This document shows positions 26,058 to 34,790 of a stretch of 64,000 nt of DNA, piece by piece. Each line of letters opens with the position of its first letter. Positions within the stretch are counted from its first letter, which is position 1. Location of the stretch: positions 1 to 64,000 of the forward strand of contig QPMI01000221.1 of NCBI GenBank assembly GCA_004431415.1, in the 5' to 3' direction. The stretch is from Cyanophora paradoxa CCMP329. Taxonomy: Eukaryota > Plantae > Glaucophyta. A program made the translations under genes and the position numbers. The notes under the pieces were generated by a model that searched no databases, had not been told where the DNA came from, and worked only from the letters and a program-made list of their open reading frames with translations.

Positions 26058-27350
26058 GTGCTCGGGGAGGGCGGGCCCGGGGCCCGGGGCAGGGCCGGGG
26101 GAGGGCGGGCCAGGGGAGGGGCGGGCCCGGGGCCCGGGCGGGCCGGGGGAGGGGCGCGCCCGGGCCCGGGCGGGGCCGGGGGGAGAGGCGGGCTGGGGAG
26201 AGGGCGGGGCCGGGGGAGGGCGGGGCCGGGGGAGGCGGAAGGCGGGGGCGGGGCCCTCCGAAGAGGGGCTGGGAGAGGGAAGGAGGTCCACGTCCTCTCT
26301 TCCCCCCGAAGAGGGCACTCCGGGGGTAGGGAGGTCCGCCTCCTCTCTCCGGGGTCAGCATGCTGCGGGTGCTCGGGGAGGGCGGGCCCGGGCCCGGGCA
26401 GGGCCGGGGGAGGGCGGGGCCAGGGGAGGGGCGGGCCCGGGCCCGGGGCGGGGCCGGGGGAGGGCGCGCCCGGGGCCCGGGCGGGGCCGGGGGAGGGCGG
26501 GGCCGGGGGGAGAGGCGGGGCTGGGAGAGGGGCGGGGCCGGGGGAGGGCGGGGCCGGGGGAGGCGGAAGGCGGGGCGGGCCCTCCGAAGAGGGGCTGGGA
26601 GAGGGAAGGAGGTCCACGTCCTCTCTTCCCCCCGAAGAGGGCACTCCGGGGGTAGGAGGTCCGCCTCCTCTCTCCGGGGTCAGCATGCTGCGGGTGCTCG
26701 GGGAGGGCGGGCCCGGGGCCCGGGCAGGGCCGGGGGAGGGCGGGGCCAGGGGAGGGGCGGGCCCGGGGCCCGGGGCGGGCCGGGGGAGGGCGCGCCCGGG
26801 CCCGGGCGGGGCCGGGGGAGGGCGGGGCCGGGGGGAGAGGCGGGGCTGGGGAGAGGGCGGGCCGGGGGGAGGGCGGGCCGGGGGAGGCGGAAGGGCGGGG
26901 CGGGGCCTCCGAAGAGGGCTGGGAGAGGGGAAGGAGGTCCACGTCCTCTCTTCCCCCCGAAGAGGGCACTCCGGGGGTAGGGAGGTCCGCCTCCTCTCTC
27001 CGGGGGTCAGCATGCTGCGGGTGCTCGGGGAGGGCGGGCCCGGGGCCCGGGCAGGGCCGGGGAGGGGCGGGCCAGGGGAGGGCGGGCCCGGGCCCGGGGC
27101 GGGGCCGGGGGGAGGGGCGCGCCCGGGCCCGGGCGGGGCCGGGGGAGGGGCGGGGCCGGGGGAGAGGCGGGGCTGGGAGAGGGGCGGGCCGGGGGAGGGC
27201 GGGGCCGGGGGAGGCGGAAGGGCGGGGGCGGGCCCTCCGAAGAGGGCTGGGAGAGGGGAAGGAGGTCCACGTCCTCTCTTCCCCCCCGAAGAGGGCACTC
27301 CGGGGGGTAGGGAGGTCCGCCTCCTCTCTCCGGGGGTCAGCATGCTGCGG
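26058..27350. repeat. G-rich tandem repeat, 4 units of about 325-330 bp
   Basis: CAGCATGCTGCGG landmarks at 26356, 26681, 27008 and 27338. Confidence 0.9.
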
Positions 27351-28440
27351 AGACGGGCATAAGACACCGAAAACCAGCGATCGCTTGGCCAATGAGAAGG
27401 CTGTGGACGTCAAGCCCGCGGCGACCGTTAGAACTGAGAACACAGAAGCGATCGCCGGCCCAGCAGCTCTTTGTTAGAGATCGGATCCGCTGGGTATGGC
27501 GCCGAACACAAAGCGATCGCCGAGCAATGAGAAGGCTCATAATTAAGCGCGCAACGCCGCGCATGAATCGAATTCGCGTCTTCATTCGAATATTTTCATT
27601 TGCATTCGTCTTCAAGGCCAACCGCCGGCGGTCCGCCGCTACCGGCGCGCGGCTATAGCTACCGCCGCGGCGCCGCCTACCGGTACCGCTCTCCGAGGCT
27701 CCTGCGACACTCATGCTGCGAGCCTGCGCATGCGCGACTCGGCGAGTCTCCTTCTAAATCTTGCCGCACGGGCCGCGGCACGGTGCATGCGCAATTGCAA
27801 GCTTAAGTTCGTTGCTTCAAGGCTTCAAATCGAGTCTAGATCTTGCGCACTGGCATATGCATGCGCATCAGTGCGATCCAGTGGCATCACTGGCATGGCC
27901 GCCGGGCGCACCGTCATGTGCACGCCGCTGCAAGGCGTCGCGCAACCGTCGCCAACCGATCGCGATTCGCGACTCAGGGCCGAGCTCGAGGAAGTCTGCG
28001 AGCTTAAGACTGCGTCTTGTGATTTCGCTTGAACTGTAAAACGTGCCGGCGCCGGCGATCGATATTCAATGATTATCAATTTAAGCCTCAGAATCGAAAT
28101 AGCAGCGACAAGCTTGACTTTGAAGGGATAGCCAATGCTGATCCGATGAAGCAATTGCAAGGAGATAAAAAAAACGAAAAACGAAATGGAGCCAAAGTTT
28201 TCTAATTACAATCGAACCTGTTCTTTCGAATCAAATGATTTATGATGATTTGCCAATATACCAAATACGCGGGGATTGTTGGAAGTTTCAAGGATGATAA
28301 TGTACCGCGAGAGGGCACGAGCGGATTAGAGGAGCCGCCTGAACATGCAGAAGGGCGGACTGGCTGATCTGGACGGCGCAGTCTCGAGGCCGAGAAGCGG
28401 GCAGGGGGAATGGGGGATCAAGGCCAGCGCGGCCGCGGGC

Positions 28441-31400
28441 TCATGCGTCGAAATCCGTGCGCGCCATCGGCGGCGGAGGCGGCCAGCTGCTGTACCCATC
28501 CGGCGGGGAGAAGCGGGGGGACGGGGGCGAGGGGTAGCCGGGGCCCGGTGCGGGGGCGGGGGCCGGCAGGGCGGGCGGGGAGACGGGGGGCGAGGCGGAG
28601 GGGTCCCACTGAGGGGCCGGGGCGGCGAGGCCGAGGGAGCTGGGGTGCCGCAGGAGGACGACGGGCCCCGAGTACCCCGCCCCGAAGTCCGGGCGGCCCT
28701 GGGGCGGCGGCGGCGGCGGCGGCGGCGGCTCGGCCTGGGGCGGGGGGAGCATAGCGGAGATGGGCGGGAGCACGCCGTAGCCGCCGCCGCCCTCCCGGGG
28801 GGAGGCGAGGGGCGTCCCCGGGCCGGGTACGGGGAATAAGGCGTCCTGGGTTGTACTGGTCGGGGCGGACGGCGGAGGTCGGGGGCGGGCGGGGGGCGGG
28901 GCTGGGGGGCCCTGCGGGGCCCCCTGGCGTGGGGCGGGCCTCGAAGGCGCCGGCCTGGGCGGTGGCGAGGGCGAGGGCGCCCGGGTCCGAGGGCGGCAGG
29001 CCGCACGCGTGCTCCAGCGCCGACCGCACCCGCGCATCCAGCTCCGGCAGCCCCGGCAGCCGCGCCTGCCCCCGCGTCACCAGGCAGGGGGGGGGGGGGG
29101 GGGGGGGGGAGGCGAGGGCCCGGGGGAAGGAGGGCCCTGGACTCGAGAGAGGAGGGACTGGGGACCCGGAAGGCCCCCCCGGCTTCTATCCCCCGTGCTT
29201 CTAGCGGGGCACGCCACCCCAGTCTAAAATTTGGGCTGCAGCCGCTCCGAGCTGCCTCTGGGGCTCCCGCTCGGTTCGGGGGCGGACCTGGCCGAGCTCG
29301 CGGACGAGGAAGTAGTTGACGGAGGAGGCCGACTCCCGGTGGAACTCCGGCCACTGCTCCTGTGCCCGCCCGCCCCGCCGTGTCGGCGTCGGCCCCCCGC
29401 GGTAGGAAGGAAACGAGAGAGGGCACGCGGCCGGCGCACCGCGAGCGCGCCGCGGCCCGGCGGGGCCAGCATCGCCAGGGACCACCTGCCGCCGCGCGCC
29501 GTCGGCGGGGGTACAGGCTCCCGCCGAGCGGGGGGGTACCGCAGCAGGATGGCGGTGACGTCCCTGGCGTCGGAGCGGCAGGCGACGCGGTAGAGGCCGT
29601 CGTACCTGGAGCGCGCCCCTGCCCCGTCGGCGCGGGCCGGCGATGGGTACGCGCGCACGCGCGCCGGCGCGCGCACCGGGCGGTGACGCGGGAGGGGGAG
29701 GGGGAGGAGGGGCCGGCGCGGGGAGAGGCCCCGTAGGCCCCCGACTCGTCTGCATCGTAGTCTGCGAGAGAGAGAGGGGGGGATCTTCGGCGGGGGTACA
29801 GGCGAGGGCGGGGAGGGGAAGGGCACCGTCGCAGTCGAGGGAGAAGCGGGCGGGCGGGGCGGGGCCGCGGGCCGAGCCCGGCGAGTCGGCCGCCCAGCCG
29901 CTGGGGCCGCCCCCGCCGCCGCAGCTGCTGACCGTCGTGTTGGAGGGGCATCCGTTCCCGCTGCCGGGGGTGCGTGCTCGAGGGGTACAGGGCCGCGTAG
30001 GGCCGGGGGAGGGGCGAGCGCTACCTGCCGACCGAGTCGCGGCGACCGCCGGGGTACCCCTGCGACAGGCACCAGGGTGAGAATCGACTCGGCGGGGGTA
30101 CCCGAAAGGAGGAGGGCCAACGCTCGCCTGGAAGAAAAAGGTGTTCGATGACTGGGGGGAGGGGGGGAATTCGGAGGGGGCCAGGTGCCGCATGTGTTCC
30201 ATTGTCGCAAGCTGGAGAGGGGGAAACAGAAGGGAGATCAGGGGCGGGGGATGTCTCGGAGAGGGGTACGGCACCTTGGAGCTGCGAAAGACTCGGACGG
30301 GCTTGCCGGAGGCCAGACTGGTGTCTAGGGCCGGCCCTCCCGATCTGCGCGTACCCCCGAGATCAGGAGAGGGGGGCGGGGGGGGGAGGGGGGGGGGGGG
30401 GGGCGGGCCTGTTGTTCGAGATGTAGAGGACGACGTCGTACCCGTCCACGTTGCGGGGGTGGAGAGCATGACGGAGGCGGCGCCCTCCTGGCGGCTCCCG
30501 GACACGTGCGGCGGGAGCTGGCGCCGGGCACGCGTCAAGATCTGGACGGGGGGGGGGGGGGGGTGGAGGAGGAGTGGGCGCGGGGCGGACGCCGCGGGGA
30601 GGACCCGAAGTGGTCGTGGAAGCCGCGGGCGCGGACCTCAGCGACAGGGAGAACCTGCGGCCCCGCCCCGGCCTCGGTCCGAGGGGCCGGCAGGCCTGCG
30701 CGGCCGGGGGCGGGGCCGGGGCCGGGGCCGGGGCCGGGGCGGACCTCGTTGACGAAGCAGCCGGGGAGTGGGCCGAAGCGGGGCGAGCGCTCCGGGCGGA
30801 CCCACGCCTCCAGCTCCACGGCGCGCCCCACCTGCCCCCGCCCCCTCAGGCCCCCCCCCTCGTGGCCCCGGCTCCCCCGTGGCGCCCCGGGTACCTGGGG
30901 CGGCTTGGCCCCCTGCCCCCGCGCCTCCTCCATCGCGCGGCGGAGCGCCCACACTGCGCCCCGCGTCAGGAGGGAGGGCCGGGGTCCCGTGAGGGGCTCT
31001 GAGGCGCCACGGGCGGCGGGGCGCAGTAGACGAGCCCTTGGGTGCAGGAGCGGGCGGCCGGTGACGGGGCAGTCCAAGAGGTGAAGGAGGGGGGGCGGGG
31101 CGGGGCGGGGCGGGGCGGGGGCACCGTCGAGCTCGCGGAAGACGATGGCGACGCGGCGCTGCCCTCTCGCTCCTCGCCCCCGCCGTCGGCGACGGCACCC
31201 GCCGCTCGTGCCTGCCACCGCGCCGCGCCCCGCGTCACCGCCGGCACCGCGCCCTCCAGGCTCGGCCCGGAGGGGCCCGCGCACCGCTGCTGCGTCATGC
31301 CGGCCATGAGGACCGACGCGTTGCGCCCTGCGCGCGCGCGCGCGTTCGCCGCGTGAGGCGCCTCGAGGCGAGTGCGGGGGGCGGGGGCGGGGCGGACGGA

Positions 31401-34132
31401 GGAGGATGCGGGCGTCGGGGGCGGCGGAGCGGGGCCCGCCCTTCCTCCGGAACTCCATCCAGCGCCGCCCCGAGAGCGAGACCGAGAGGACCCTGCCCGG
31501 GCCGCCGCCCGCGTCGGGGGGGTGGAAGGATCGGGGGCAGGAGGGCCGGGCGGCCGGACCTGGCGTTCTGGGGGTCGGGAGCGAGCCGCGCGTCGTCGGC
31601 GTGCCAGGCCATCTGCCCGCCCCGCCGCCCGGCCACCGTCAGCCGGCGCACGGGGGCGCGCGGCAGCGCGGGGCACGCGCGCACGTGGTGCTTGCCGTCC
31701 ATGTACCCCACCACTGCGCCGAGAGCGAGGCGCCAGGGGGGCGGGGGCGACATCAGGGGGTCGGCGCCTTCGCTCGCGCCCTGGCGCGGGGGCGGGGCGC
31801 ACGGTCGACGAGGGTCGGGTCGATGCCGAAGAGGGACCTCGCTCGCCCCACGAGCGGCATCAGCGCCTCCCGCAGCTCCCCCCGCAGCGCCTGCGCCTGC
31901 GCGGAAGGGTCAGCCGCAGCGAGGGGGCGGGCCCGAGGGGGACAGGGGCGGGGGCGGGCGGGCCTGGACCCAGAGGCCGGCGGCGTAGGGGTAGGCGAGG
32001 CCTGCGGGGGCGAGTCGGGGGCGGAGCGGGGCGGGAGAGCAGGCGGGGGGAGGGGCGCGCCCTCGTGCTCGGGCGGACGAGGAAGAGGGCGTGGAGGCGC
32101 GGCTCGGGCTCCGGGATGCCGTGCGCCAGCTGCGCCCCCGCGGCGGCCCCGGGCGGGCGCGAGTCGGCGGCGGGGCGCGGGGCGGGCGCGGGGCGGGGAC
32201 GGGGCAGGCACCAGGTGGAACTGCTGGAGGTGGGTGATGGCCCGCTCGCCCGCGCGAGCTCCTGCGGCGAGTCAGCGTGCGGCGCCGGGCGGGGCGGGGC
32301 GGGGCGGGCGGACCTCGTCCGGGAAGGCGTTGTAGACGACGCGGGCCGGCGAGTAGGCGTCGAGGTGGACCGTCACCGACGTCGCCGCCGCCGGGCCCGG
32401 CCCTCCCCGCTGCCAGCCAGCGTCACGGCCCGGGCCACGGCGCGCGCCGGCGCTCGGCCGCGGGGGGGGGGGGGGGGGGGGGGGGAGGAAGCGCAAGGCT
32501 GCTCCTAGGGGCACGGATGGATGGGATGGCCGGCGGTGCGCCGAGCCGGAGGCGCGCTCGGCGGGGAGGAGGCGGGGCGGCTCGGGCGCACCGGCCCGCG
32601 GTGCCACCGTGTCGTCGACGGTGAGCACGCCGCCGAACTGCGCGCGCAGGCGCCCTCTTCGGCTCCACCAGACCGGCGGGCAACCCCGCGGGCGGCGCGG
32701 GCGGCGCGGGGCGGGCGGGGCGGCGCGGGGCGGCCGCACCGAGGCCCGCCTGAGGCAGTGCGCGAGGTAGGCGTCCTGCGTGGCCGCCCCGCGCCGCCCG
32801 CCGCTCAGGCCGCCGCGCTCCAGCGCTTGGGCGCAGGGCGCGGCGCGGGACGCACCCAGAGAGGCCCCGCCAGTCCGACTCGTCGGGCCGCTCCCCGGGG
32901 CGAAGCGCCAGGGCGGCGCTCTGCGCGCGGGGCACGCCGGGGCCGGCCGGTCAGGCCCCGCGCGCGCGCGCCCCGCGACGAATTGCGCCTCGCACCGCGC
33001 CCCGGGCGTCGTCGATGACGGCCACCAGAGCGGAGCCAGCCGCCTCCGCGTGCGGGCCGGCGGCCGGGCCGGGCGCGGCGGGGACGCCGCGGCCGTCCTC
33101 GTAGTAATGCCCGTTGGGACCTGCGTTCGCCGGGACGTATCCGCTTCGCCTGAGGACGGGCGAAGAAACTCGAGTCAGCAGGAGACTCGGGGAGGGAGAT
33201 TCGATGATCGCGACGACGGGGAGCACATGGGCTGCCTGAACTCGTCGCTGGGGCGGCCGCGGGGGTCCTCCTCGCCCCCCGGCGCGACCCCCCGGGCGCG
33301 CTTGGCGGGCGGGGGCGACTGGTTGTAGGGCGTCGGGCCGCCCCCGAGGGGCCGCACTTGCGCGTGCGGGCCCCCTGGCCCCTGCCCGTGGCCCGGCCCG
33401 TGCCCCGGGTCGAGCTCCAGCGGGGGCCGGGGCGGCCCGTGCCGCGGGTACCGCGACGACGCCTCCTGGAGGATCTGCGCGGGGGAGCGCGCGCTCGGGC
33501 CGCGACTGCCGCCGCTCGGCCGGTGGCGAGCGCGCACGTTTATGGTCCGCTGGACGCAGTAGGCGCAGGGGCACTCCCTGGTGGCGGGAGGCGGGCCCGG
33601 GGCGGAGTCAGCCGCGCGGCGCGTGCCGCTGCGTGGCCAGCGCGCGAGGGGGCGAGGGGGCGCGGACCCCGTGCAGACGGGGCAGGGCTGGCCCTCTCGG
33701 TAGCGGCTGGCGCAGACGGAGCAGAACTGGTGCGCGTGCTTGCGCGAGGAGCGGCAGCTGTGGAACTTCACGCCCCGCTCGTCCACCTGCCGCCCGCCCG
33801 CCCGTCAGACCGCGCCGCAGCGCTAGCCTCCCGCTGGCCATGCCGTCGCTCAGGACGAAGGCCGTGCAGGCGGACGCGTACTAAGCGTCCGAGAGCGAGC
33901 GGCGTAAGGGGTTCTGGGCGGCGCTTCTCGAGCCCACCTTCTTCTTTCGGCAGCGGTGGCAGCTGAACCAGTTGACGTCAGCCCTGGTCTCCTCGCGGTC
34001 GCCGCGGTCCTCTGCATCCGCCGGCGTCGCTCCCGCGAACGGAGGCGCACCAGCTCCGTACTCCTGGACGAGCCCGCCGCCTTGCCAGTCGTCACCTCCT
34101 CCTTCGGCCGCGGGCGCGTATGCGGGTCGCAT
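28441..34132 (-). CDS. Multi-exon protein: zf-4CXXC_R1 zinc finger + AlkB-like 2OG-Fe(II) dioxygenase + SRA(SAD/YDG) domain + Pro-rich tail
   Basis: Zn finger: SCHRCRKKK|YASAC...HSC...QFCSVCASRY...CPVCTG|ECPCAYC. AlkB: EPRLHALF, YPY, QMAWHADD (31595-31603), VLSVSLSGRRWMEFRRK, SVLMAGMTQQ, RVAIVFR. SRA: RFGPLPGCFVNE|..EVRARGFH, HVSGSRQEGAASVMLS, NVDGYDVVLY, LDTSLASGKPVRVFRSSK, RYDGLYRV, YFLVRELGQ. Confidence 0.8.
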
Positions 34133-34790
34133 GGCGCCGGCGCGCGAGACCCACACGCGAGATCCTGGCCCAGTGGATCTGCTGCGACACTGCGGCAGCA
34201 AAACTCATGACACATGGTCCTGGCGCAGTCGCACAGGGCAACTCTCACCTGGAGACGCGCTCAGATGCTGCAGCGAGTCCTGCAGCGAGTCCTGCACTCC
34301 CGCAGGGCGGCAGTCTTCTACTAGGCTATAAGGTCCAATATTAATGAGGCTGCGCGCCCACATGGACGTGAGACTCGGGATGAACGTCGAACATTGGGAA
34401 GGCGTCAAATATGCACGAACGAGCGCACTGCGGCACTGGAGGACGATGCGACGCGGCCCGCGGAGGGCCACGCGTCCGCTGCGCCGGCGCCGGCCCCGCG
34501 GGCGGTCCGCGGCCAAAGCTTGACTTTGCTTCGCGTCAGCGGCGTCACTGAGTCACTGAGTCAAGCGGCCTCAAGCCTCGACGCTGCCTCGTCCAACTTG
34601 GGAAGCTTCTTAATTCAAGGCTTGCAAACTTGAAAGCCTTGACTCAGTGAAGCACTATAGCTAGTACTGCTGCGGCGGCAGTGCGGCCAGCTGCCACGCG
34701 TACTACGGAGTCTACGGTACGCGTAGTCGTCGCGTACGACGTCGCCGAGTCGACCGGTTTAATACCGGTAGGTCCGGTACCGCAGATCGA

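Follow-up and report, generated by a model that had tools for sequence, protein, structure and literature searches.

A Cyanophora paradoxa gene with the motifs of a CDCA7-type zinc finger, an ALKBH2-like dioxygenase and an SRA domain: a putative three-part fusion protein

The minus strand of the window (the whole stretch of 64,000 nucleotides that was analyzed) carries, from 34132 to ~28441, a single nuclear gene of Cyanophora paradoxa with ~30 coding exons and a product of ~1,030-1,040 aa. The features of this gene are listed in Table 1. An earlier note on this DNA had placed three motif sets in one exon chain and read them as one protein, in the order CDCA7-type finger, AlkB-type dioxygenase and SRA-type domain. 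We found all three sets where they had been placed, within one spliced transcript, and RNA contigs, closed exon phases and Pfam assignments agreed with the proposed domain order. The matching public gene model, EukProt tig00000950_g5762.t1 (P0001), has 1112 aa and the same start and end as the gene outlined in the earlier note.

Table 1. Features of the finger-AlkB-SRA gene, in window positions and in the order of transcription
Feature	Position	Strand	Basis
5' UTR exon	34249..34478	-	upstream end inferred from RNA contig excess beyond 34189
59-nt GT..AG intron	34190-34248	-	donor and acceptor read in sequence
Exon 1: 57 nt of UTR, ATG 34132, acidic/Gly N-terminus, first CXXC	33938..34189	-	RNA contigs; model residues 1-65
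First CXXC (C-H-R-C-R)	33938-33964	-	sequence
Exon 2, middle of finger: Cys, His-x-His, F-C-x-x-C, C-P-x-C	33668..33786	-	RNA contigs, Pfam, CDCA7 alignment
FCxxC...CPxC motif set	33667-33786	-	sequence
Exon 3 (40 nt), end of finger, C-x-C-x-x-C	33538..33577	-	contig gap of ~40 nt; AG and GT read
CxCxxC	33547-33576	-	sequence
Exons 4-5 (33227-33474, 32996-33149): Pro/Gly-rich linker, KRAR basic patch	32996..33474	-	RNA contigs; no family in Pfam search
Exons 6-9: pre-AlkB region and N-terminal part of AlkB core	32311..32920	-	RNA contigs
Exons 10-18: AlkB (2OG-FeII_Oxy_2) core	31125..32261	-	Pfam, ALKBH2 match, RNA contig joints
HxD iron ligands (W-H-A-D-D)	31592..31612	-	aligned to ALKBH2 HxD (H-R-D-D)
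Distal His (R-H-E-R-R-V-P)	31193-31213	-	sequence
RxxxxxR (R-V-A-I-V-F-R)	31126-31164	-	sequence
Exon 19: short AlkB-SRA linker	30895..30953	-	RNA contigs; model residues 603-622
Exons 20-27: SRA-like domain	29540..30831	-	Pfam SAD_SRA; exon lengths match contig arithmetic exactly
Exon 23 with G-K-P-V-R-V-F-R (PVRVFR at 30296-30328)	30275..30344	-	SAD_SRA profile 86-109
Three exons inserted in SRA	30128-30211, 30026-30060, 29827-29960	-	~85 aa together
Exon leading into YDG motif	29677-29761	-	RNA contigs
R-Y-D-G-L-Y-R-V (SRA YDG signature)	29584..29613	-	sequence
Exon 28 (29287-29358) and last exon from 29065: helical stretch, then Pro-rich tail	28441..29358	-	RNA contigs to 28916; gene model
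Stop, two options	28441-28443 (gene model) or 28418-28420 (uninterrupted frame)	-	

Spliced RNA contigs from 3 runs of 2 studies had the same structure and bridged 34189-28916 unbroken, joining all three motif sets; the RNA status of these runs is assumed, with the splicing pattern as its sole support. The contigs measured 2865 nt in run X1 and 2412 nt in run X2, and those of run X5 agreed. The introns removed in them were short (most 63-102 nt), and nearly all ended in CT..AC on the plus strand, that is, GT..AG on the minus strand; GC-AG introns were found after 32061 and 31964. In run X8 the introns were read through contiguously, and this run is therefore DNA-like. From the ATG up to where the last exon begins, the contig coordinates gave 2478 nt, or 826 codons, with exon lengths and phases that close, apart from one 3-nt in-frame mismatch between the 826-codon sum and these coordinates. 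The splice pattern of the public model, together with a GC-AG intron at 30345-30408, was an exact fit to this arithmetic. Hand-made exon models (30102-30211, 29516-29605 and a continuous 30275-30517) were off by 10 and 21 nt and were rejected. At the 5' end, RNA contigs reached 107-230 nt past 34189, pointing to an extra UTR exon above 34249, and a longer open reading frame upstream of the ATG was ruled out by an in-frame TGA at 34261-34263.

We considered whether two or three neighboring genes had been fused by the gene predictor and the contig assembly. A contig running across two genes would not prove a single transcript, and besides the assumed status of the runs, the 3' part at 28518-28915 has no RNA contig cover. 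However, exon phases close over every domain boundary, the finger-AlkB and AlkB-SRA linkers are ordinary, stop-free spliced coding exons, and the same contigs recurred across runs and studies, which makes such an artefact extremely improbable. Separate genes revealed by RNA would have spoken against the earlier note, and the contigs of all three runs joined the domains instead. The three-part architecture, finger-AlkB-SRA in one protein, is very probably real.

Reading frames in the window break because single bases are missing from G/C runs: the RNA contigs carry 10 or more single bases, within G/C homopolymers, that are absent from the window, which has a G+C content of 80%. For example, the RNA adds one base at each of ~32776/32855, 32604 and 32400 within exons 6-9, and two bases, after 31176 and after 31161, at the end of the AlkB core. 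The public model is partly wrong as a gene model. Pfam search of ~3,100 aa of raw long frames from the same region, junk included, returned one weak RING match only, and an exon-by-exon search returned only one SRA exon (profile positions 86-109, E 0.21, 11.8-13.8 bits) and RING-like half-matches.

In the central part of the protein, the top Pfam family was 2OG-FeII_Oxy_2 (PF13532), with E 7e-7 and 30.1 bits for model residues 500-580 and E 1.7e-6 and 28.8 bits for a second AlkB slice of the model; both scores fall under the gathering score of 31.2 bits and cover only profile positions 94-165 of 194, the flanking exons being mis-framed in the searchable model. The best match in a search of solved structures was human ALKBH2 (E 0.04, HxD aligned). 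The AlkB-family structures retrieved were 12 human ALKBH2 sequences only, which occupied ranks 1-12. In the ESM Atlas, the nearest named clusters all bear PF13532, a finding we treat as a lead only. A tblastn search of the window with E. coli AlkB left the AlkB exons within the noise of this GC-rich sequence. By alignment to ALKBH2 and by reading of the window, the HxD...H iron triad is complete, and both Arg residues of the 2-oxoglutarate-binding RxxxxxR motif are kept on the last strand; the distal His and RxxxxxR share one frame only when two RNA-supported bases are counted. Aligned with ALKBH2 (for example PDB 3BTZ), the core corresponds at HxD, at the Tyr of the N-x-Y motif before HxD and along the strand after HxD, but overall identity is low and the Asn of N-x-Y is Val here, so that this motif as a whole was not recovered. 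These observations suggest an ALKBH2-like dioxygenase with metal and 2-oxoglutarate ligands in place, consistent with the AlkB dioxygenase proposed in the earlier note.

The Val at the conserved Asn, a Pfam score just under the cut-off and the long, low-complexity Pro-rich regions would also suit an inactive or protein-directed dioxygenase, in a molecule that serves mainly as a chromatin scaffold or reader. We regard this as improbable: the HxD...H triad is kept, as are both Arg residues of RxxxxxR, and the sub-threshold score is accounted for by frame errors in the sole searchable model.

The N-terminal cysteine-rich part had zf-4CXXC_R1 (PF10497) as its top family, with E 0.0058 and 17.2 bits (gathering score 22.7 bits) over profile positions 5-75 of 99 and model residues 45-135. 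Profile positions 76-99, which represent the C-terminal helices, had no match, and these helices are required in CDCA7 for binding of hemimethyl-CpG DNA (PMC11343034). CDCA7 was also the top solved-structure match (class I; PDB 8YV8, 8TLE), with an alignment of 60 residues in which 10 of the 11 signature Cys correspond; no Cys stands opposite the third, and His residues are close by. Class I sensors of the zf-4CXXC_R1 family are defined by the ICF residues R274, G294 and R304 (PMC10538959). Of these, R274 is kept, G294 is replaced by His and R304 falls in a gap; in addition, CDCA7 Q275 is Lys here and Cys 6 is separated from Cys 7 by 9 residues, versus 19 in CDCA7. An AlphaFold2 model of the finger built without an alignment was unusable (pLDDT 51.8). 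Because only R274 is kept among the three ICF residues, the finger is not a class I hemimethyl-CpG sensor, and its sequence resembles diverged class II/III forms.

It could be argued that the N-terminal zinc domain is instead a RING of the E3 ligase type and that the protein is a UHRF1/VIM-like RING and SRA factor that acquired AlkB. RING profiles gave E 0.02-0.05 on the second half of this domain, BMI-1-type RINGs were among the solved-structure matches, and the pairing of RING with SRA is already known. Yet on the full 91-aa slice zf-4CXXC_R1 was best (E 0.0058 versus 0.49-4) and covered 63 residues, whereas the RING profiles (PF00097, PF14634, PF13920) scored 7.8-15.4 bits over that second half only, below cut-offs of 21-28. 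The third ligand is misspaced for C3HC4 or C3H2C3, and the CDCA7 alignment takes in the trailing C-x-C-x-x-C, which is absent from RING. Assignment to RING was rejected on these grounds, and a ligase of this type has a low probability.

For the C-terminal part, SAD_SRA (PF02182) was the only Pfam family found on the slice (E 0.0017, 18.6 bits, two stretches within model residues 640-900); the score lies under the gathering score of 30.7 bits, and the searchable model has ~26 residues from the core of the domain in a wrong frame. Both SRA motifs occur in profile order, the PVRV strand (G-K-P-V-R-V-F-R) upstream of R-Y-D-G-L-Y-R-V, and the domain is interrupted by the insertion of ~85 aa encoded by three exons. 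No solved SRA was retrieved with this part in a sequence search of solved structures, the ESM Atlas gave no usable match for it, and AlphaFold2 without an alignment gave an unusable model (mean pLDDT 29.8). Compared with UHRF1, whose 5mC pocket has a stacking Tyr pair and an Asp and which carries an NKR-type finger, the domain seems to retain the second Tyr but neither the first Tyr, nor the Asp, nor the finger loop, which we regard as a lead. The domain appears to be a divergent, PUA-like SRA. In all three slices the family expected from the earlier note came first in Pfam, and every score lay below its gathering score. The view of finger and SRA as two methylcytosine readers was not supported in that form: the finger has only one of the ICF residues and no match to the C-terminal end of the profile, the SRA is so divergent that the sequence search retrieved no solved SRA, and the ligand predicted for the fungal AlkB-SRA fusions is not 5mC.

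Searches for related proteins used pieces of the window and the public model as queries. With the AlkB core of the gene model, the homologue search returned, among candidates of 612-1946 aa, only the protein itself. Similarly, in an exhaustive phmmer search of 1.84 billion representatives with a read-through piece of 297 aa, the only match was tig00000950_g5762.t1, and no second organism with the AlkB-SRA junction appeared; the query was fragmentary, and this is weak evidence of absence. A 478-aa open frame gave no matches in homologue searches, one of which was dominated by poly-Pro junk words, and read-through pieces of the window gave nothing useful among solved structures. The finger-AlkB-SRA form was absent from the literature searched and from these limited database searches. 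AlkB-SRA fusions are already described in fungi; what is new here is that a finger is joined to them and that the host is a glaucophyte.

Fusions of AlkB with a divergent SAD(SRA) domain in several fungi, which the earlier note had mentioned, were described by Iyer, Zhang and Aravind (2016, PMC4738411), together with SAD/SRA fusions in the AlkBH3 clade. Like the present gene, they combine an AlkB dioxygenase and a divergent SRA in one polypeptide and are known from sequence analysis only, the likeness being one of architecture by description. The C. paradoxa protein differs from the fungal form in its host, in a core nearest ALKBH2, in the extra N-terminal finger and in the SRA insertion. The finger has its own parallels in the plant and fungal class III proteins IBM1, JMJ24 and DMM-1 (PMC10538959), in which a diverged zf-4CXXC_R1 with lost ICF residues and a short Cys 6-7 spacer is likewise fused to a 2OG/Fe(II) dioxygenase, one that opposes methylation-linked silencing. 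However, their dioxygenase is of the JmjC type (histone substrate) and is found without the SRA present here, where the dioxygenase is AlkB-type (nucleic-acid substrate). UHRF1 and VIM (ORTH), factors connected with CpG methylation, also pair an SRA with a zinc domain rich in Cys. In these proteins, however, the zinc domains are of the PHD and RING types, a dioxygenase is lacking, and the SRA has a canonical 5mC pocket. ALKBH2, with ~260 aa, has no reader domains.

Taken together, the sequence points to a protein that is probably a targeted nucleic-acid demethylase. Its center would be an ALKBH2-like Fe(II)/2-oxoglutarate dioxygenase with catalytic residues in place, and the finger on the N-terminal side and the SRA on the C-terminal side would hold the enzyme on chromatin. 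We infer that DNA is the substrate, that the flanking domains do the targeting, and that a lesion or mark is removed. The C. paradoxa genome shows 32% mCG and encodes DNMT1 and DNMT3 (PMC12344493). Across eukaryotes ALKB2 co-evolves with DNMT1/DNMT3, and the reason given is the production of 3mC by DNMTs (PMC9246332), the source that agrees with the earlier note on this point. The preferred substrate would be N-methyl lesions (3mC, 1mA) created by DNMT1/DNMT3 in heavily CpG-methylated DNA and repaired by direct reversal. Repair of 3mC/1mA at methylated DNA, taken by itself, is a tentative assignment with less than an even chance of being right, while the overall explanation (a fusion gene for a chromatin-held demethylase, with N-methyl lesion repair preferred) stands slightly above even.

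Other substrates would lead to different readings. Instead of repairing damage, the protein may erase an N-methyl mark with a regulatory role, for example N6-methyladenine of DNA or RNA, and the divergent SRA would recognize that mark and not 5mC. For the fungal AlkB-SRA proteins, an m6A ligand was predicted from distinct SRA features (PMC4738411), and the SRA is divergent here as well. However, the core comes closest to ALKBH2, which repairs 3mC and 1mA, and a search of the C. paradoxa proteome for the PF01555 N6/N4 methyltransferase had no matches (PMC12344493); this reading is unlikely. Alternatively, the SRA may flip out 5mC for oxidation by AlkB to 5hmC, 5fC or 5caC, giving a TET-independent eraser. 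ALKBH2, ALKBH3 and AlkB oxidize 5mC in vitro (PMC6582317), and SRA- and CDCA7-type modules are what such an eraser needs; but in the known enzymes this activity is weak and secondary, and the 5mC-reading residues of finger and SRA are not conserved, leaving it very improbable. A broader version, a methylation proofreader or eraser in which finger and SRA would dock the dioxygenase on methylated CpG for removal of 3mC left by DNMTs or oxidation of 5mC, is distinctly unlikely.

Returning to the preferred lesion-repair reading, the link between ALKB2 and DNMTs has until now come mainly from cross-species co-occurrence and from the production of 3mC by DNMTs. An ALKBH2-like enzyme that is naturally fused to two domains known elsewhere for their connection with methylated CpG would add gene-fusion evidence for this link, and it would offer one recombinant protein for joint tests of targeting and catalysis. 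It also extends the partners of diverged zf-4CXXC_R1 fingers from JmjC to AlkB dioxygenases. If the proofreader or eraser reading were true, the gene would tie AlkB chemistry physically to the 5mC machinery, as a Rosetta-stone fusion, in a lineage close to the base of Archaeplastida. Should the flanking domains instead recognize something other than 5mC, the protein would point toward a new mark, on DNA or RNA, in glaucophytes.

We found one transcribed gene on the minus strand encoding, in this order, an N-terminal CDCA7-type Cys-rich domain (the finger), a central AlkB core with an intact catalytic set (HxD...H and RxxxxxR) and a C-terminal SRA-like domain. The three motif sets of the earlier note were all located by reading the sequence (see table). 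Across 28300-34300, where G+C is ~80%, hundreds of codons are open in all six frames, so that open frames are uninformative there.

Motifs of the gene and bases present in transcript contigs and absent from the window
Feature	Position	Strand	Source
Cys-rich set, C-H-R-C-R	33938-33964	minus	sequence
Cys-rich set, F-C-x-x-C + C-P-x-C	within 33667-33786	minus	sequence
Cys-rich set, C-x-C-x-x-C	33547-33576	minus	sequence
AlkB set, W-H-A-D-D	31592-31612	minus	sequence
AlkB set, R-H-E-R-R-V-P (distal His)	31193-31213	minus	sequence
AlkB set, R-V-A-I-V-F-R (RxxxxxR)	31126-31164	minus	sequence
SRA set, G-K-P-V-R-V-F-R	30296-30328	minus	sequence
SRA set, R-Y-D-G-L-Y-R-V	29584-29613	minus	sequence
Extra RNA base	after 30454		RNA contigs
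Extra RNA base	after 31161		RNA contigs
Extra RNA base	after 31176		RNA contigs
Two extra RNA bases	near 30597		RNA contigs
One extra RNA base each	near 32071, 32400, 32604		RNA contigs
One extra RNA base	32776/32855 joint		RNA contigs

The word share of the stretch was ~0.25-0.29 in seven sequencing runs of one organism, about that expected from the mRNA of a many-intron gene, and 0.44 in an eighth run. Reads of four runs were aligned to window positions 28280-34279 (6000 nt). Contigs of runs X1, X2 and X5 (two studies) skip short stretches, most of 63-102 nt, nearly all with CT..AC ends on the plus strand, i.e., GT..AG on the minus strand. These runs were taken as RNA because ~30 introns are cleanly removed, the label itself being a guess, and run X8, which covers introns contiguously, behaves as DNA. 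The X1 contig (2865 nt, 34189 to 28916) and the X2 contig (2412 nt, 34189 to just below 29827) pass through the motif-bearing exons. Joining of these exons in spliced contigs bears out the earlier proposal that finger, AlkB and SRA lie in a single transcript.

The exon chain was built from contig joints and sequence and then compared with the contig's own coordinates. From the ATG at 34132 to the last-exon start at 29065 the exons total 2478 nt (826 codons), in agreement with the contig. One in-frame 3-nt mismatch was seen in the AlkB part (exon sum 1023, contig 1020), which the choice of a NAGNAG acceptor (CAGGAG at 32261, minus strand) would explain. Ordinary coding exons with closed phases span every domain boundary. 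Four GC-AG introns are apparent (donors after 32061, 31964, 30409 and 30128, minus strand), two fixed by RNA joints and two inferred from the exact contig-length fit. An additional 5' UTR exon ends at 34249, followed by a 59-nt intron, and an in-frame TGA at 34261-34263 marks the ATG at 34132 as the start. At the other end, RNA contigs break over 28518-28915, with a depth minimum in 28680-28879, a GGC/poly-Pro coding repeat. Because this stretch is unbridged, the C-terminus and stop codon are uncertain: the gene model, which shifts frame across it via a predicted intron, gives 28441-28443, and the uninterrupted frame 28418-28420. Approximately 1 kb past the 3' end lies a G-rich tandem repeat (26088-27350; 325-326 bp unit, 3.9 copies, 93% matches, subunits of 16-17 and 33 bp), in which long open frames rich in Pro and Gly, present on both strands, are probably not genes.

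Exhaustive phmmer search of 1.84 billion representatives with a 297-aa stop-free read-through piece (30601-31491, minus) returned exactly one protein (E 1e-24, 93% identity, four stretches), the singleton-cluster EukProt entry EP00741_Cyanophora_paradoxa_P005944 (model tig00000950_g5762.t1; P0001 below). On the minus strand it spans 34132-28444, in agreement with the gene extent proposed earlier. The splicing it predicts at 30026-30211 and 29495-29605 agrees exactly with the RNA contigs. At 29228-29286 (minus) it adds 26 codons inside the X1 contig's intron after exon 28, which reflects alternative splicing or else an error of prediction. P0001 also retains two introns, skips the distal-His segment and reads the exons at 32061-32261 and the exon part 30455-30517, with the few codons before it, in the wrong frame; these faults lie where the assembly itself is wrong. 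All three RNA runs carry extra single bases in G or C runs, and with each the frame bearing conserved residues is regained. For example, the distal His and RxxxxxR share one frame only after two RNA bases are added, and the base after 30454 is needed for the G-A-A-S-V-M-L-S strand to continue into N-V-D-G-Y-D. Between the DNA-like run X8 and the window, too, there is a one-base homopolymer difference at 30240, which together with the frame-restoring bases indicates assembly errors. A broken gene was rejected on this restoration of the conserved frame and the difference at 30240, and RNA editing on the same evidence.

Domain scores were obtained from slices of P0001, exon-by-exon searches being nearly blind at such exon sizes. 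Each slice matched the Pfam family predicted for it, with a score below the cut-off. For 2OG-FeII_Oxy_2 (E 7e-7, 30.1 bits, cut-off 31.2) the score covers only profile positions 102-165, the rest being unscorable in P0001. With an RNA-corrected joined protein the AlkB match would very likely rise above its cut-off, and the SRA match perhaps too. No such domain matches were found in ~3,100 aa of long, mostly junk frames from the same region used as control. Within the AlkB family, the solved-structure search returned only 12 human ALKBH2 sequences (E 0.04), which were the 12 best matches; the alignment includes HxD and, within N-x-Y, the Tyr, with Val in place of the Asn. PF13532 was present in all of the nearest named clusters of the ESM Atlas, which serves as a lead only. 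In the AlkB-SRA linker (P0001:598-614, window ~30920-30970), a sub-threshold DUF6900 match (E 0.0059, 16.9 bits) is probably due to chance.

SAD_SRA matched in two stretches (E 0.0017, 18.6 bits, cut-off 30.7), and the window exon alone matches the same profile region; a sequence search of solved structures with the SRA part retrieved no solved SRA. The YDG and PVRV strands are kept and ~85 aa are inserted from three exons, whereas the loop that bears the NKR finger in UHRF1 is absent. Compared with that of UHRF1, the 5mC pocket presumably lacks both its first stacking Tyr and its Asp. AlphaFold2 without alignment gave no usable model of either flanking domain.

The 91-aa finger slice matched zf-4CXXC_R1 (E 0.0058, 17.2 bits, cut-off 22.7; profile 5-75 of 99) ahead of RING families. 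Its top solved match was CDCA7; 10 of the 11 signature Cys align, as does the residue corresponding to R274. Class I domains are defined by 11 Cys plus R274, G294 and R304 (PMC10538959); in the present finger His replaces G294, nothing corresponds to R304, and the spacer between Cys 6 and Cys 7 is shortened, as in class III (IBM1-type JmjC proteins; PMC10538959). Reading of hemimethylated CpG requires R274, Q275 and C-terminal helices (PMC11343034). Since Lys stands in place of Q275 and the C-terminal part of the profile finds no match, the finger shares the scaffold of CDCA7 but not the reader demonstrated there, and with the changes at G294 and R304 its earlier assignment as a CDCA7-type reader is not supported.

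Fusions of AlkBH3-clade enzymes to SAD/SRA are on record, and several fungi have a divergent SAD(SRA) fused to AlkB (Iyer, Zhang and Aravind, PMC4738411); diverged zf-4CXXC_R1-JmjC dioxygenase fusions are widespread in plants and fungi (PMC10538959). The three-part form was absent from the literature surveyed, and no second protein with it was found by two weak searches, one of a representative library with AlkB-SRA junction fragments and one word-based, with the AlkB core as query among 612-1946-aa proteins. The AlkB-SRA pairing is known, and within these limited searches the three-part combination appears to be new.

The earlier interpretation is supported in part: the analysis shows one transcribed gene with an intact catalytic set, and the proposal of two methylcytosine readers is not supported. 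The main rival to DNA repair is erasure of an N6-methyladenine-type mark, as m6A, not 5mC, has been suggested as the ligand of SAD(SRA)-AlkB proteins (PMC4738411). Oxidation of 5mC, of which ALKBH2, ALKBH3 and AlkB are capable in vitro (PMC6582317), is the least likely activity. DNMT1 and DNMT3 methylate 32% of CpGs in C. paradoxa, for the most part in repeats and silent genes (PMC12344493); 3mC is a product of DNMTs, with which ALKB2 co-evolves (PMC9246332). We infer an ALKBH2-like demethylase that would be tethered to chromatin and would most probably repair N-methyl lesions in methylated DNA.
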